From the sequence record OP617745.1: a stretch of 64,000 nucleotides of DNA, one strand, 5' to 3'. Below are positions 22,579-24,719 of the stretch, piece after piece. Each line of letters opens with the position of its first letter. Position 1 is the stretch's first letter. A program made the translations under genes and the position numbers. The notes under the pieces were generated by a model, which worked only from the letters and a program-made list of their open reading frames with translations, ran no database searches and had not been told where the DNA came from.

Positions 22579-22628
22579 GGATGATTATAAATCTGAATTG
22601 ACAGAAACAGCTAAAACTGTTATTATCC
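22579..22628 (+). ncRNA. 50-nt three-way-junction motif, copy 1
   Basis: GGATGAT-TATAAA-TCTG AATTGA CAGA-AACAG CTAAAA CTGTT-ATTATCC. Confidence 0.7.
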
Positions 22629-22636
22629 TATTTTAT

Positions 22637-22821
22637 TCCACAATCAGACGTATATGGTGTAAGTTACGTCGATGAAATCCAGAACAAGATCTCTGGTACT
22701 CTAGGAAGTGGTGAATGTTAACCTAGACGGGTTTGTTAATTGGACGATAAGCAATTAATACTTGACTAGCAGGTTTAAACTAGAGGTGACTGTCCTTCAC
22801 TATACTGGAAAACCGGGTGGA
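22637..22821 (+). ncRNA. multi-hairpin structured RNA candidate
   Basis: TCCAC/GTGGA closes hairpins GACGTA/TACGTC, CCAGA/TCTGG, CTAGG/CCTAG, TTAATTG/CAATTAA, CTAG/CTAG, GTGA/TCAC. Confidence 0.5.
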
Positions 22822-22830
22822 CTTTTAATT

Positions 22831-22867
22831 AAAAAGTGTTGAACAAAATGTTCAATAATGATATAAT
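22831..22867 (+). promoter_or_regulatory. tRNA-cluster promoter with TTGAAC-N5-GTTCAA palindrome
   Basis: TTGAAC-17-TATAAT with inverted repeat over -35. Confidence 0.8.
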
Positions 22868-22958
22868 AAGTATCAATGTAAGGCATGGAACAATGTTTAC
22901 AGAAGTTACTTAGTAGCCTGTACGCCCCATGTCAAGGTAGCCGAAAGGCAAGTTTAAT

Positions 22959-23008
22959 GGGTGGTTATAAATCTGAATTGACAGAGACTATTAAAACAGT
23001 CACCATCC
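22959..23008 (+). ncRNA. 50-nt three-way-junction motif, copy 2
   Basis: GGGTGGT-TATAAA-TCTG AATTGA CAGA-GACT..AGTC-ACCATCC. Confidence 0.7.
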
Positions 23009-23194
23009 AAATTTTAATTTAATAGTTTAGTATGAATAAAAAACAAATACATAAACATTATGATGAAATTGCAGTGAAGGTTTTTCGTGGTGAATTAGGT
23101 TATAAACCATCTGTTAAATCTAAATATTCAAAATCTTCTTCAATAAAGTTCAATCATAAAATAGAGTTTAAATAATACTGGACAATAATATATA

Positions 23195-23644
23195 ATGAAT
23201 ATCACTAATGTAAAAGATTTTTTAGAATATTTTATTAAGAATACTCGTGCACGTGATGAATTAGAAAAGAATGGATTCATCCAAGGTTACGATTGCACTA
23301 ATTTCTTTTATACTATAGATAAACATGAATATTATGTCGATGCAATTTTAATTGATGATGATGGGTATTGTGTTGGATTTTCGTTCGAAGATATATCACA
23401 AGATGCACCAATAAACTTTTATGCATTATATTATAATAAAAAAGATAATATTTTGAAATTAGGATTTACCAGTGACACGGATGAAGATGTTGTATTCAAT
23501 TGTAACACATGGTTGGAACATGATTCATTCTTTCAAAGTACATTAATTCATAACTTTATGACAACAGATTTAGAGTACTGGAAAAATTGCATAGAATTAC
23601 TTAATGTAATTTATAATGAACAAATCAAACAAAAATGGCAATAA
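23195..23644 (+). CDS. FQxS(T/L) C-terminal-motif family protein
   Basis: WLEHDSFFQSTLIHNF.TTDLEYWKNC. Confidence 0.8.
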   Translation: MNITNVKDFLEYFIKNTRARDELEKNGFIQGYDCTNFFYTIDKHEYYVDAILIDDDGYCVGFSFEDISQDAPINFYALYYNKKDNILKLGFTSDTDEDVVFNCNTWLEHDSFFQSTLIHNFMTTDLEYWKNCIELLNVIYNEQIKQKWQ

Positions 23645-23700
23645 TCACAGAACGGTTCAGCATTTGGTAGTATGTTTGACTGAATAAAGCATAAACGTGT

Positions 23701-23737
23701 AAAAAAGTGTTGAACAAAAAGTTCAGTACTATATAAT
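23701..23737 (+). promoter_or_regulatory. tRNA-cluster promoter
   Basis: TTGAAC AAAAA GTTCAG..TATAAT. Confidence 0.75.
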
Positions 23738-23748
23738 TGACTTACTAC

Positions 23749-23822
23749 GTCCCCTTAGTTCAGTTGGATAGAACAACTGCCTTCTAAGCAGTAGGTCACT
23801 GGTTCGAGTCCAGTAGGGGATA
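23749..23822 (+). tRNA. tRNA-Arg (UCU)
   Basis: GTCCCCT/AGGGGAT, ACTGC-CTTCTAA-GCAGT, GGTTCGAGTCC. Confidence 0.92.
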
Positions 23823-23869
23823 TACCATACAATATGGGAATAGTTAGAAGATATTCCCAATTTTAATTT

Positions 23870-23907
23870 AAAAAAGTGTTGAACAAAAAGTTCAATAATG
23901 ATATAAT
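23870..23907 (+). promoter_or_regulatory. tRNA-cluster promoter
   Basis: TTGAAC AAAAA GTTCAA..TGATATAAT. Confidence 0.8.
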
Positions 23908-23975
23908 GGTATTATAAAAGGTTGTAATACTTAATATTAACTTTTAAGAAGATAATTAGTATTATACACAAATTT

Positions 23976-24062
23976 AGTGAGTTGGATGAGTGGTTGAAAT
24001 CACCACCCTGCTAAGGTGGCATATGCGAAAGCGTATCGTGGGTTCGAATCCCACACTCACTG
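23976..24062 (+). tRNA. tRNA-Ser (GCU)
   Basis: AGTGAGT/ACTCACT, CCACC-CTGCTAA-GGTGG, long variable arm, G discriminator. Confidence 0.92.
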
Positions 24063-24074
24063 TAAAATTCAATT

Positions 24075-24112
24075 AAAAAAGTGTTGAACAAAAAGTTCAA
24101 TGCTGATATAAT
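24075..24112 (+). promoter_or_regulatory. tRNA-cluster promoter
   Basis: TTGAAC AAAAA GTTCAA..TGATATAAT. Confidence 0.8.
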
Positions 24113-24123
24113 AAAAGAATAAC

Positions 24124-24211
24124 GGAAGGATGGCCGAGTGGTTTAAGGCACTGGTCTTGAAAGCCAGCAATCCGAAAGGGTTCTAGAGTTCAAATCTCTA
24201 TCCTTCCACCA
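24124..24211 (+). tRNA. tRNA-Ser (UGA)
   Basis: GGAAGGA/TCCTTCC, CTGGT-CTTGAAA-GCCAG, variable arm, ACCA end. Confidence 0.93.
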
Positions 24212-24219
24212 GATTTTAT

Positions 24220-24269
24220 GGATAGTTATAAAGTTGAATTAACAGCGACACTTAAAATTGTCACTATCC
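24220..24269 (+). ncRNA. 50-nt three-way-junction motif, copy 3
   Basis: GGATAGT-TATAAA-GTTG AATTAA CAGC-GACA..TGTC-ACTATCC. Confidence 0.7.
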
Positions 24270-24284
24270 AAATTTTAATTTAAA

Positions 24285-24319
24285 TAGTACTTGACAAAAA
24301 TGTTCAGTACTGATACAAT
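24285..24319 (+). promoter_or_regulatory. promoter of intron-containing tRNA
   Basis: TTGACA-17-TACAAT with GTTCAG half site. Confidence 0.7.
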
Positions 24320-24329
24320 AAAGAATATT

Positions 24330-24640
24330 GGCCCCTTAGCTCACGCTTTGGTTAGAGCAGACGACTCATCGATAAATGGTGACTTTCACAAGTAATTGTG
24401 ATTGAAAAACTGGATGAATTCAGGGAAACCTTAACACATAATGGTGATGGCAATCCTGAGCCAAGCCCAATAAGCGTATTGGGAAGGTGCAGAGACTAGG
24501 TGGTTCAGCACGATCTTGCTGTGTAATACACCAATAGCGTCCGGCATCCTTATAGGATGATGATATAGTCCTTTCTATAATGAAAATTATAGGTAAAAAG
24601 AATCGTTTGGTACTGTGTTCGACTCACAGAGGGGCCACCA
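24330..24640 (+). tRNA. tRNA-Ile2 (CAU, ileX-like) split by a group I intron; exons 24330..24369 and 24601..24640
   Basis: Joined exons give GGCCCCT/AGGGGCC acceptor, GACGA-CTCAT^AA-TCGTT anticodon arm, T arm and ACCA, closely like E. coli ileX. Confidence 0.88.
24370..24600 (+). mobile_element. group I intron (IC3-like), 231 nt, no ORF
   Basis: Preceded by U, ends in G; P1 TCAT^CG/TGGTGA with U.G; P3 CTGGATG/CGTCCGG; TCAGGGAAACC, GGCAATCCTGAGCCAAG, GAAGGTGCAGAGACTA, GATATAGTCC cores; P9 CTATAAT-GAAA-ATTATAG. Confidence 0.92.
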
Positions 24641-24643
24641 CAC

Positions 24644-24719
24644 ATTGTACTCTTCTCCCGTAAGGAGAATGACAAAAAGCTATCCTAAAGATAGAAAGCC
24701 TGAATTAACAGGGTGCAAT
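24644..24719 (+). ncRNA. permuted variant of the 50-nt motif
   Basis: ATTGTAC/GTGCAAT closes TTCTCC/GGAGAA, CTATC-CTAAA-GATAG and CCTG-AATTAA-CAGG hairpins. Confidence 0.55.

Follow-up and report, generated by a model that had tools for sequence, protein, structure and literature searches.

A covarying 50-nt three-way-junction RNA element, with promoter hexamers in the same DNA, in the tRNA cluster of Klebsiella phage KP13-7 and in other phages

The DNA analysed here, called the window below, is a stretch of 64,000 nucleotides (nt) of the genome of Klebsiella phage KP13-7 (OP617745.1), a RaK2-like jumbo phage of the genus Alcyoneusvirus; window coordinates equal record coordinates minus 62000. 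Its region at 21.4-24.8 kb is a cluster of transfer RNA (tRNA) genes, comprising six tRNAs called by ARAGORN, a seventh, tRNA(CAU), with a group I intron, two open reading frames (ORFs) for HNH endonucleases and several unannotated spacers. Within this cluster lies the subject of this work, a 50-nt element that a scan with a degenerate core pattern found exactly three times in the 64 kb (0.02 expected). All three copies are on the + strand, which is the strand that folds, and all genes around them are on that strand too. A covariance model run on the window recovered the same three copies at 72-75 bits, the next match reaching 15.9 bits, and in related loci it returned nothing beyond the known copies. 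An earlier note on this DNA, made from the letters alone, had described the three copies with their stems and hairpins and had suggested such a search. Both scans place the copies where that note had put them, and the three-way junction formed by those stems is the minimum free energy (MFE) fold of each copy. The copies and the features that belong to them are the following.

22579-22628, + strand: copy 1; closing helix P1 GGAUGAU/AUUAUCC, linker UAUAAA, side hairpin P2 UCUG-AAUUGA-CAGA, hairpin P3 AACAG-CUAAAA-CUGUU; 72.9 bits with the covariance model.
22598-22626, + strand: sigma-70 promoter-like pair within copy 1; -35 TTGACA at 22598-22603, 17-nt spacer, TG-extended -10 TATTAT at 22621-22626; hexamer score 11/12.
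22959-23008, + strand: copy 2; P1 GGGUGGU/ACCAUCC; identified by the covariance model (75.4 bits) and by its fold.
23009-23024, + strand: A/U tract AAAUUUUAAUUUAAUA, directly after copy 2; its Asteriusvirus counterpart is one A and then 6 to 9 U.
24220-24269, + strand: copy 3; P1 GGAUAGU/ACUAUCC; identified by the covariance model (72.5 bits) and by its fold.
24270-24319, + strand: A/U tract AAAUUUUAAUUUAAAUA and canonical promoter TTGACA-17-TACAAT (24291-24319), located upstream of the intron-containing tRNA(CAU) gene, which it probably drives.

Copy 1 is flanked on its 5' side by tRNA-Gly and a spacer of about 110 nt, and on its 3' side by a conserved RNA that we call 'part 1'. Copy 2 forms the 3' domain of a unit that runs from the promoter at 22839-22867 to the U tract and includes an 85-nt RNA ('part 2'); the orthologous copy-2 elements, present in Asteriusvirus and in the metagenome contig L128, always follow this same RNA. 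It should be noted that a 45-codon ORF running through copy 2 (window 22885-23022) is annotated as a hypothetical protein in the RefSeq genome of phage K64-1; most likely, structured RNA has here been mistaken for a gene. Copy 3 starts 8 nt after the CCA end of tRNA-Ser(UGA), located at 24124-24211, and the corresponding copy of metagenome contig L129 (its copy 3) starts 8 nt past tRNA-Arg. To this extent the location among tRNA genes, to which the earlier note had drawn attention, holds. The 5' flank AG(T/A)TT(T/A)A, which it had reported before all copies, precedes part of the jumbo-phage copies and is lacking from the rest. A larger repeat upstream of copies 1 and 2 was considered and found unconvincing, its alignment score being 51.5 against 36.4 +/- 5.6 (maximum 54) for shuffles, and the 150 nt that run from after tRNA-Gly into the first 39 nt of copy 1 fold no better than shuffles (z = -0.06).

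The copies share a fold that consists of a closing helix P1 of 7 base pairs (bp), the 6-nt linker UAUAAA, a side hairpin P2 of 4 bp with the 6-nt loop AAUURA, and a hairpin P3 of 4-5 bp with the loop YUAAAA, which is stacked directly on P1 with zero unpaired bases between the two. The fold energies of copies 1-3 are -10 to -13 kcal/mol, with MFE z-scores of -2.4 to -3.4 (for copy 1, -9.7 kcal/mol and -3.1). The three-way junction is kept in contexts of 150 nt, including those that contain the upstream tRNA-Ser or small RNA. The reverse complements of the copies adopt a different fold, which is not a three-way junction.

Covariation was analysed in a gap-free alignment of 14 distinct copies from this and other phages, to which all counts out of 14 below refer. 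Of its 50 columns, 27 are invariant and correspond mostly to unpaired bases, whereas the stems vary. Standard pairs are formed by 96.4% of the pair cells, compared with 30-61% when the partners are slid. Both-sided changes were found in six pairs, spread over all three helices, one pair of P3 occurs in four different Watson-Crick forms, and the covariation score was reached by none of 500 shuffles. These figures bear out the observation, already made in the earlier note, that the stems change sequence yet keep pairing while the loops are conserved. In addition, the pair cells contain 21 G:U and only 2 A:C combinations, and therefore it is only the + strand, which is the transcribed one, that folds. 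At the base of P1, G1:C50 is kept in 13/14 copies and G2:C49 in 14/14. The fifth pair of P3, equivalent to G53:C61 of tRNA, is the most variable pair of all and is unpaired in 4/14. Since the sequences are related, and represent perhaps eight lineages, the covariation falls short of formal statistical proof, but the case is strong: this is a genuine RNA structure, specific to one strand, with covarying pairs and conserved unpaired positions. Pairing between the two loops (UUR with UAA) is compatible with all copies, that of L128 requiring a 2-nt shift, and the loops themselves are invariant.

With respect to its distribution, BLAST searches showed identical or near-identical triplets in all Alcyoneusvirus genomes. 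The Asteriusvirus phages of E. coli and Salmonella (121Q, PBECO4, SD-*) have one copy each, which is orthologous to copy 2; phage EJP2 has a copy at a different location, and Escherichia phage UE-S1 has a truncated one. The latter (contig L011, 4006-4045) covers model positions 6-45 and scores 49 bits; the 3' strand of its P1 has been replaced at the edge of an inserted gene block. Unexpectedly, the Klebsiella podophages Asterion and Klyazma, which have genomes of 48-50 kb and belong to the genus Citrovirus (Zobellviridae), also contain one copy each. Pattern scans, carried out with three patterns over IMG/VR and with one each over the JGI metagenomes and GTDB (one genome per species), added a few phage contigs (L033, L128, L129 and L131), and the exact patterns are confined to Alcyoneusvirus, Asteriusvirus and Citrovirus-like contigs. 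No bacterial copy was found among one genome per GTDB species, the two bacterial matches being chance ones, and all other pattern matches in IMG/VR, JGI and GTDB failed the pairing test. That unrelated phages of the same host group have the element in common implies horizontal transfer. The element is also dispensable, being missing after tRNA-Ser in 121Q and UE-S1, missing in Citrovirus phage VR7901, and truncated in UE-S1.

No Rfam 15 family matched at the element, either with E up to 1 on 7 kb or with E up to 10 on 81 nt, and the same holds for six related loci; the best score at the element was 12.8 bits, with E above 2. The absence of a match extends to tRNA, to hammerhead, hepatitis delta virus (HDV)-like, twister and pistol ribozymes and ribozymes in general, to the purine riboswitch and riboswitches in general, and to small RNAs. 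The earlier note had named a match to a known terminator or attenuator family as a result that would speak against its reading; Rfam 15 gave no match. In the literature we found no description of the 50-nt motif, and no transcriptome for these phage genera. The element is a structured RNA motif without an earlier description, and its distribution among phages is narrow.

The DNA that encodes this structure contains promoter hexamers in a fixed register. In all copies, element positions 20-25 read TTGACA (TTAACA in five copies) and are followed, after 17 nt, by xAxxAT at positions 43-48, in the variants TATTAT, TATCAT, TACTAT, CACCAT and CACTAT. Four bases of this register never vary, namely G at -14, A at -11, A at -8 and T at -7. 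The hexamer score is 11/12 for copy 1, Asterion, Klyazma and L033, 10/12 for EJP2, and 8-9/12 for copies 2 and 3 and the 121Q group, whose -10 is CACYAT. In the window as a whole, sites that score at least 11/12 number 28 on the + strand and 2 on the - strand, against 2.6 in shuffles, and those on the + strand are therefore mostly real promoters. Copy 1 aligns hexamer for hexamer with the canonical promoter of the orthologous 'part 1' RNA in 121Q, SD6, CMSTMSU and L128. The distance from the end of the Citrovirus copies to the ATG of the first ORF annotated inward of the terminal repeat is 28-29 nt, and the EJP2 copy is located 22 nt upstream of tRNA-Arg. The copies with a good -10 have no U tract, and the CACYAT copies have one. 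Copy 3, which belongs to the latter, is followed by a canonical promoter 21 nt further downstream. The canonical promoters of the tRNA region, for example those at 22839-22867, 23710-23737, 23879-23907, 24084-24112 and 24291-24319, share a spacer of conserved sequence (GTTCAGTACTG or GTTCAATAATG) as well as an inverted repeat across the -35; judging from this repeat, they could also form hairpins in read-through RNA.

Other spacers of the region show what ordinarily occupies the place of the element. At 20410, 22821 and 23859, simple hairpins are followed by A(A/C)UUUUAAUU and then by a canonical promoter. Copies 2 and 3 hold the position of these simple hairpins, before AAUUUUAAUUU, and the next promoter follows copy 3 only. 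The tail AAUUUUAAUU that comes after copy 2 is also found after the simple hairpins at the three sites. In the Asteriusvirus orthologues the tract of A and U6-U9 comes straight after the closing helix, and in copies 2 and 3 the corresponding sequence is AAAUUUU.

A further characteristic of the element is its location with respect to gene content. The genes downstream of copy 2 are unrelated in KP13-7 and 121Q, and a search for a shared downstream gene showed that the ORFs that follow the element in KP13-7, 121Q and Asterion are unrelated to each other. In UE-S1, the breakpoint falls within the closing helix P1. In EJP2, the element is present together with the 3' GNRA hairpin of 'part 2' in the spacer between tRNA-Ser and tRNA-Arg, two tRNAs that are adjacent in UE-S1. 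Among the Citrovirus phages, VR7901 has the same promoter -10 (AATGCTATCAT) and the same gene, but no element lies between them. Thus, in KP13-7 versus 121Q, in UE-S1, in EJP2 and in Klyazma versus VR7901, the element is located at indel or replacement junctions. VR7901 has a simple G+C hairpin at the site of the Klyazma element. We do not take it as a sign of a 5' cap, since the likely start of the shared promoter lies inside this hairpin. Finally, Asterion (contig L012) contains a degenerate tRNA-like sequence at about 1414-1487, some 45 nt upstream of its element, whose 7-bp acceptor is GGGCUAA/UUAGUCC and whose T arm, UCAGG-UUCGAUU-CCUGA, is perfect; ARAGORN is silent on it, and Klyazma has another sequence in its place.

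Short composite cassettes that combine a terminator and a promoter have been described in T4-type phages. In these promoter-early stem-loop (PeSL) cassettes, which are found at indel joints, a stem-loop is followed by an AT-rich tract and then by a sigma-70-like promoter (PMC4122927). Tentatively, and ahead of the readings discussed further below, we regard the 50-nt element as a mobile, PeSL-like transcript-boundary cassette, in which structure and promoter are superimposed. As + strand RNA, it forms a compact three-way junction, with the 7-bp helix on the 5-bp hairpin and the side hairpin of 4 bp attached via UAUAAA. In the jumbo-phage copies a U-rich tract comes next, and fold and tract together may end and cap the upstream stable-RNA transcript, be it a tRNA or a small RNA, by termination or by protection of the end, which would be the same job as that of the ordinary hairpins in the neighbouring cassettes. 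As DNA, the same 50 bp would bear a sigma-70 promoter, whose -35 TTGACA is placed in the loop and 3' strand of the side hairpin and whose -10 YAYYAT is placed in the 3' strand of the closing helix, and the copies with a good -10 (copy 1, EJP2 and Citrovirus) could restart transcription of the downstream sequence. Like PeSL cassettes, the element is located at the joints of mosaic gene modules, where we infer that it might have a role in recombination.

This cassette reading accounts for the presence of TTGACA in the side-hairpin loop, for the unchanging A44, A47 and T48 beside covarying neighbours, and for the division of the copies into promoter-like and terminator-like states. If it is true, the element constitutes, to our knowledge, the first known case in which 50 bp encode both a conserved, branched RNA fold and a sigma-70 promoter, which travel as a single unit from phage to unrelated phage. 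It would also be an aid in the annotation of genomes of ~350 kb, in which the element is now unannotated or called as a hypothetical protein.

Several observations weigh against the cassette, and they concern both of its supposed activities. With regard to termination, the Citrovirus and EJP2 copies have no U tract, the tract of copies 2 and 3 begins 3 nt beyond the helix, and the stems, at -10 to -13 kcal/mol, are weak. A consensus terminator scan calls none of the copies, since it handles unbranched stems only. Moreover, ORFs begin 24-26 nt past the elements of the copy-2 lineage, and a strong terminator there would therefore silence them. With regard to initiation, the -10 is poor in 9/14 copies (CACCAT or CACTAT, 8-9/12), yet UAUAAA, AAUURA and UAAAA are invariant, which neither a plain terminator nor a decayed promoter explains; the conserved UAAAA loop lies in the spacer, where it has no promoter role. 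Also, PeSL cassettes have a simple hairpin of variable sequence upstream of the promoter, whereas the element is a three-way junction with its 27 invariant positions. The invariance of the three unpaired segments in copies with a poor -10 points to a tertiary fold or to a binding partner. Such a partner more likely comes from the host, because unrelated phages have the element in common.

On the other hand, the element might be a tRNA-shaped processing signal, that is, a tRNA without an anticodon arm, at which ribonuclease P (RNase P) would cut at G1 and free the upstream RNA with a short trailer. It would at the same time release a mini-RNA of ~50-56 nt, and would in effect be a terminator that the tRNA-processing machinery can remove. 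We consider this possible but rather doubtful. The idea is close to that of the earlier note, which saw in the element a mimic of an acceptor stem with a T arm, and part of that comparison stands. The helix lengths of 7, 4 and 5 bp equal those of the acceptor, D and T stems, and the last hairpin abuts the closing helix, so that P1 (7 bp) on P3 (4-5 bp) resembles the 12-bp coaxial stack of acceptor and T stem. The conservation of G1:C50 and G2:C49 is in line with such a signal, and so is the tRNA-like spacing of 8 nt past tRNA-Ser (copy 3) and past tRNA-Arg (L129). The clusters also house other non-tRNA RNAs in tRNA slots, namely 'part 1' and a cloverleaf-like RNA at 24644-24719, and the tRNA cluster of T4 itself contains RNAC and RNAD, whose role is unknown (PMC3014915). 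The remainder of the comparison fails. None of the six tRNAs called by ARAGORN is at the element, and the Rfam tRNA model (RF00005) is silent there, even when the search space is reduced to 81 nt. There is no T-loop consensus UUCRANY closed by G53:C61, but a loop YUAAAA (UUUUAA in L128) on the least conserved pair of the structure, and there is no third hairpin that could be an anticodon arm. Nor is there a free single-stranded NCCA: the 'CCA' in which the earlier note saw the end of the element is no free tail, as both C are engaged in pairs with G1 and G2, and the A/U tract begins with the A. The base that follows the CC varies between A, U and G, copy 1 giving CCU and the Citrovirus and EJP2 copies giving CCG. 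Furthermore, the Citrovirus copies are located just past the shared -10, and ARAGORN found no tRNA in the 2.7-5.7 kb scanned per locus. Finally, a processing signal leaves the exact register of -35, 17 nt and -10 unexplained. It is an unlikely prospect, slightly more so than processing as such, that the element represents a new class of tRNA-shaped mini-RNA that host RNase P excises from phage transcripts. If it were, maturation of phage tRNAs and small RNAs would be possible independently of RNase E, and the excised RNA of 50-56 nt might bind a host factor that recognises the elbow and acceptor of tRNA.

It seems less probable still that the element is a sequence-specific regulatory RNA, whose invariant linker and loops bind a host factor or a small molecule, and which acts as an attenuator or as a put/nut-like signal. 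Binding would then decide whether the closing helix forms and, hence, whether transcription stops at the U tract. The 27 invariant columns, mainly unpaired, beside variable stems speak for such an RNA, and its occurrence in unrelated phages of Enterobacteriaceae again points to a host partner. In the contexts of copy 2 and of Citrovirus, ORFs begin 24-29 nt past the element, and the architecture, in which the closing helix continues into one hairpin with the second one parallel to it, permits the UUR-UAA loop-loop contact. Against this, no riboswitch or ribozyme of Rfam matches, the content downstream is inconsistent (an ORF, a tRNA, a small RNA or a promoter), there is no conserved alternative pairing, and the Shine-Dalgarno sequence is not sequestered.

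Another option, which we think improbable, is that the element is a promoter only, with conserved bases that represent the -35, the -10 and an upstream A/T element, and with an RNA fold that has no function. It draws on the register and scores of the hexamers and on copy 1, which replaces a canonical promoter. In addition, a promoter-like site of the related phage Klyazma, at the boundary of its terminal repeat, has in its -10 region the same ten bases (GCTATCATCC) as the 3' strand of P1 in Asterion. However, a promoter gives no reason for six double-changed pairs, some of which join positions -56 to -50 to the -10, over a distance of 40 nt, and the ratio of 21 G:U to 2 A:C is a signature of RNA. 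Besides, the -10 is CACYAT in 9/14 copies, and copy 3 has a canonical promoter 21 nt later.

The suggestion of the earlier note that the element acts as a decoy against tRNA-targeting defences, or as bait for a phage protein, is not supported, and we judge it very improbable. The tRNA-like outline and the location in a tRNA cluster are all that it has in its favour, and the context does not favour a tRNA decoy. The best-known anticodon nucleases, for example PrrC, target the anticodon arm (PMC3014915), which the element lacks; the identity elements of tRNA are absent, several close relatives (121Q, UE-S1 and VR7901) do without the element, and there is no linked defence or anti-defence gene. 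As for a 21-codon micro-ORF (MGGYKSELTETIKTVTIQILI / MDSYKVELTATLKIVTIQILI) as the selected feature, we reject it as next to impossible: one frame is open through all copies, and in copies 2 and 3 it begins at an ATG whose last base is G1 and closes at a common stop codon, but the majority of copies (copy 1, 121Q, EJP2, L128, L129 copy 3 and the Citrovirus copies) lack a start codon and are closely preceded by a stop in the same frame, and the substitutions keep base pairing, not codons.

In addition to the 50-nt element, the tRNA cluster contains three other conserved RNAs.

22637-22830, + strand: 'part 1' RNA, ~195 nt, downstream of copy 1, part of its context and not of the element; no Rfam match.
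22872-22958, + strand: 'part 2' structured RNA, ~85 nt, upstream of copy 2; its 3' GNRA hairpin GGUAGCC-GAAA-GGCAAG travels with the element.
24644-24719, + strand: cloverleaf-like RNA, ~75 nt, between tRNA(CAU) and tRNA-Asn; MFE -20.6 kcal/mol, z -3.6.

The 'part 1' RNA is 83-99% identical in Asteriusvirus, in T4-like phages of the genus Bragavirus (Proteus phages PM2 and Pm5461, Morganella phage Mm5 and Shigella phage SdyM_006) and in the T5-like Novosibvirus (Proteus phage 2). It occupies a tRNA slot in the Bragavirus and Novosibvirus phages, with 4 nt to the tRNA before it and 6-11 nt to the one after it (PM2, Proteus phage 2 and SdyM_006), and its distribution suggests a widely transferred, uncharacterised tRNA-cluster RNA. 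In 'part 2', compensatory changes are seen between KP13-7, 121Q/SD6 and L128 (GGCAUGG/CCAUGUC, GGCGUGG/CCACGUC and GGUGUGG/CCACAUC); copy 2 is always next to it, and it has its own promoter in KP13-7 and is fused to 'part 1' in 121Q. The third RNA has a four-way fold, in which a 7-bp closing helix encloses three hairpins. It is conserved in 121Q, UE-S1, Muenster and L129, with compensatory changes from CUAUC/GAUAG to CUACC/GGUAG and from CCUG/CAGG to CUUG/CAAG, and it is missing in E9.1 and SD-6, where the flanking tRNAs are 4-7 nt apart. The earlier note had taken it for a fourth, permuted version of the element. However, the covariance model matches only its hairpin CCUG-AAUUAA-CAGG (11.8 bits, E = 0.83), and its second loop is CGAAA in relatives, not CUAAA. 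It is, therefore, a separate conserved cloverleaf-like RNA and no member of the 50-nt family.

The tRNA(CAU) gene (24331-24642) is split after the anticodon loop by a group I intron (at about 24344-24592; Rfam RF00028, 104 bits) and was missed both by ARAGORN and in the GenBank record; the layout is the same in L129, and the tRNA-Met of 121Q is uninterrupted. The two HNH ORFs (21524-22357 and 24850-25419) encode free-standing homing endonucleases among the tRNA genes; in the annotation of phage Muenster both are named HNH endonucleases, in that of KP13-7 hypothetical. With at least three further conserved RNAs of unknown role, one of them common to T4-like and T5-like phages, the tRNA clusters of these phages look like a reservoir of uncharacterised stable RNAs.

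Below, we compare the element with known systems. Its architecture resembles the 'tuning fork' of purine riboswitches, which have P1 on P3 with P2 alongside, a possible loop-loop contact and a J1/2 strand that starts with UAUAA. Unlike these, the element has no J2/3 or J3/1 strands and no Rfam match, and its helices are half as long. Processing signals that resemble tRNAs include the tRNA punctuation of mitochondria, mascRNA and the minihelix substrates of RNase P. The element has in common with them the 7-bp helix on a 5-bp hairpin, forming a 12-bp coaxial stack, and the location between genes of a polycistronic RNA; it differs in its lack of an anticodon arm, a T-loop consensus, a free CCA and a match to the tRNA model. 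RNAC and RNAD of T4, whose role is unknown and whose maturation presumably goes along with that of the tRNAs, are likewise non-tRNA RNAs located among tRNA genes (PMC3014915, PMC9697503), but the element is much shorter (50 nt), is multi-copy, and is also found outside tRNA clusters, in Citrovirus.

Intrinsic, or Rho-independent, terminators share with the element a closing helix, a U-rich tract within 1-3 nt in the jumbo-phage copies, and the slot that ordinary terminator hairpins occupy. They differ from it in that the element is branched, AU-rich and weak, has conserved loop sequences and, in certain copies, has no U tract. The nearest likeness is to PeSL cassettes, which Comeau 2014 describes (PMC4122927) and Arbiol 2010 reportedly describes as well. 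It is true that the -35 and -10 of the element lie inside the structure and not downstream of it, and that it is also present in an unrelated podophage genus. On the other hand, both are short repeated intergenic cassettes of early or hyperplastic regions, and both are found at indel and replacement junctions of related phages. Degraded 'half' copies exist in both as well, copy 2 being such a 'half' cassette, with a tract and without a downstream promoter. Copy 3, followed by AAATTTTAATTTAAATAGTAC and then by TTGACA-17-TACAAT, shows the very order of a PeSL cassette. If the composite reading is true, the PeSL idea would extend from T4-type phages to the giant phages of Klebsiella, E. coli and Salmonella, and to a genus of podophages.

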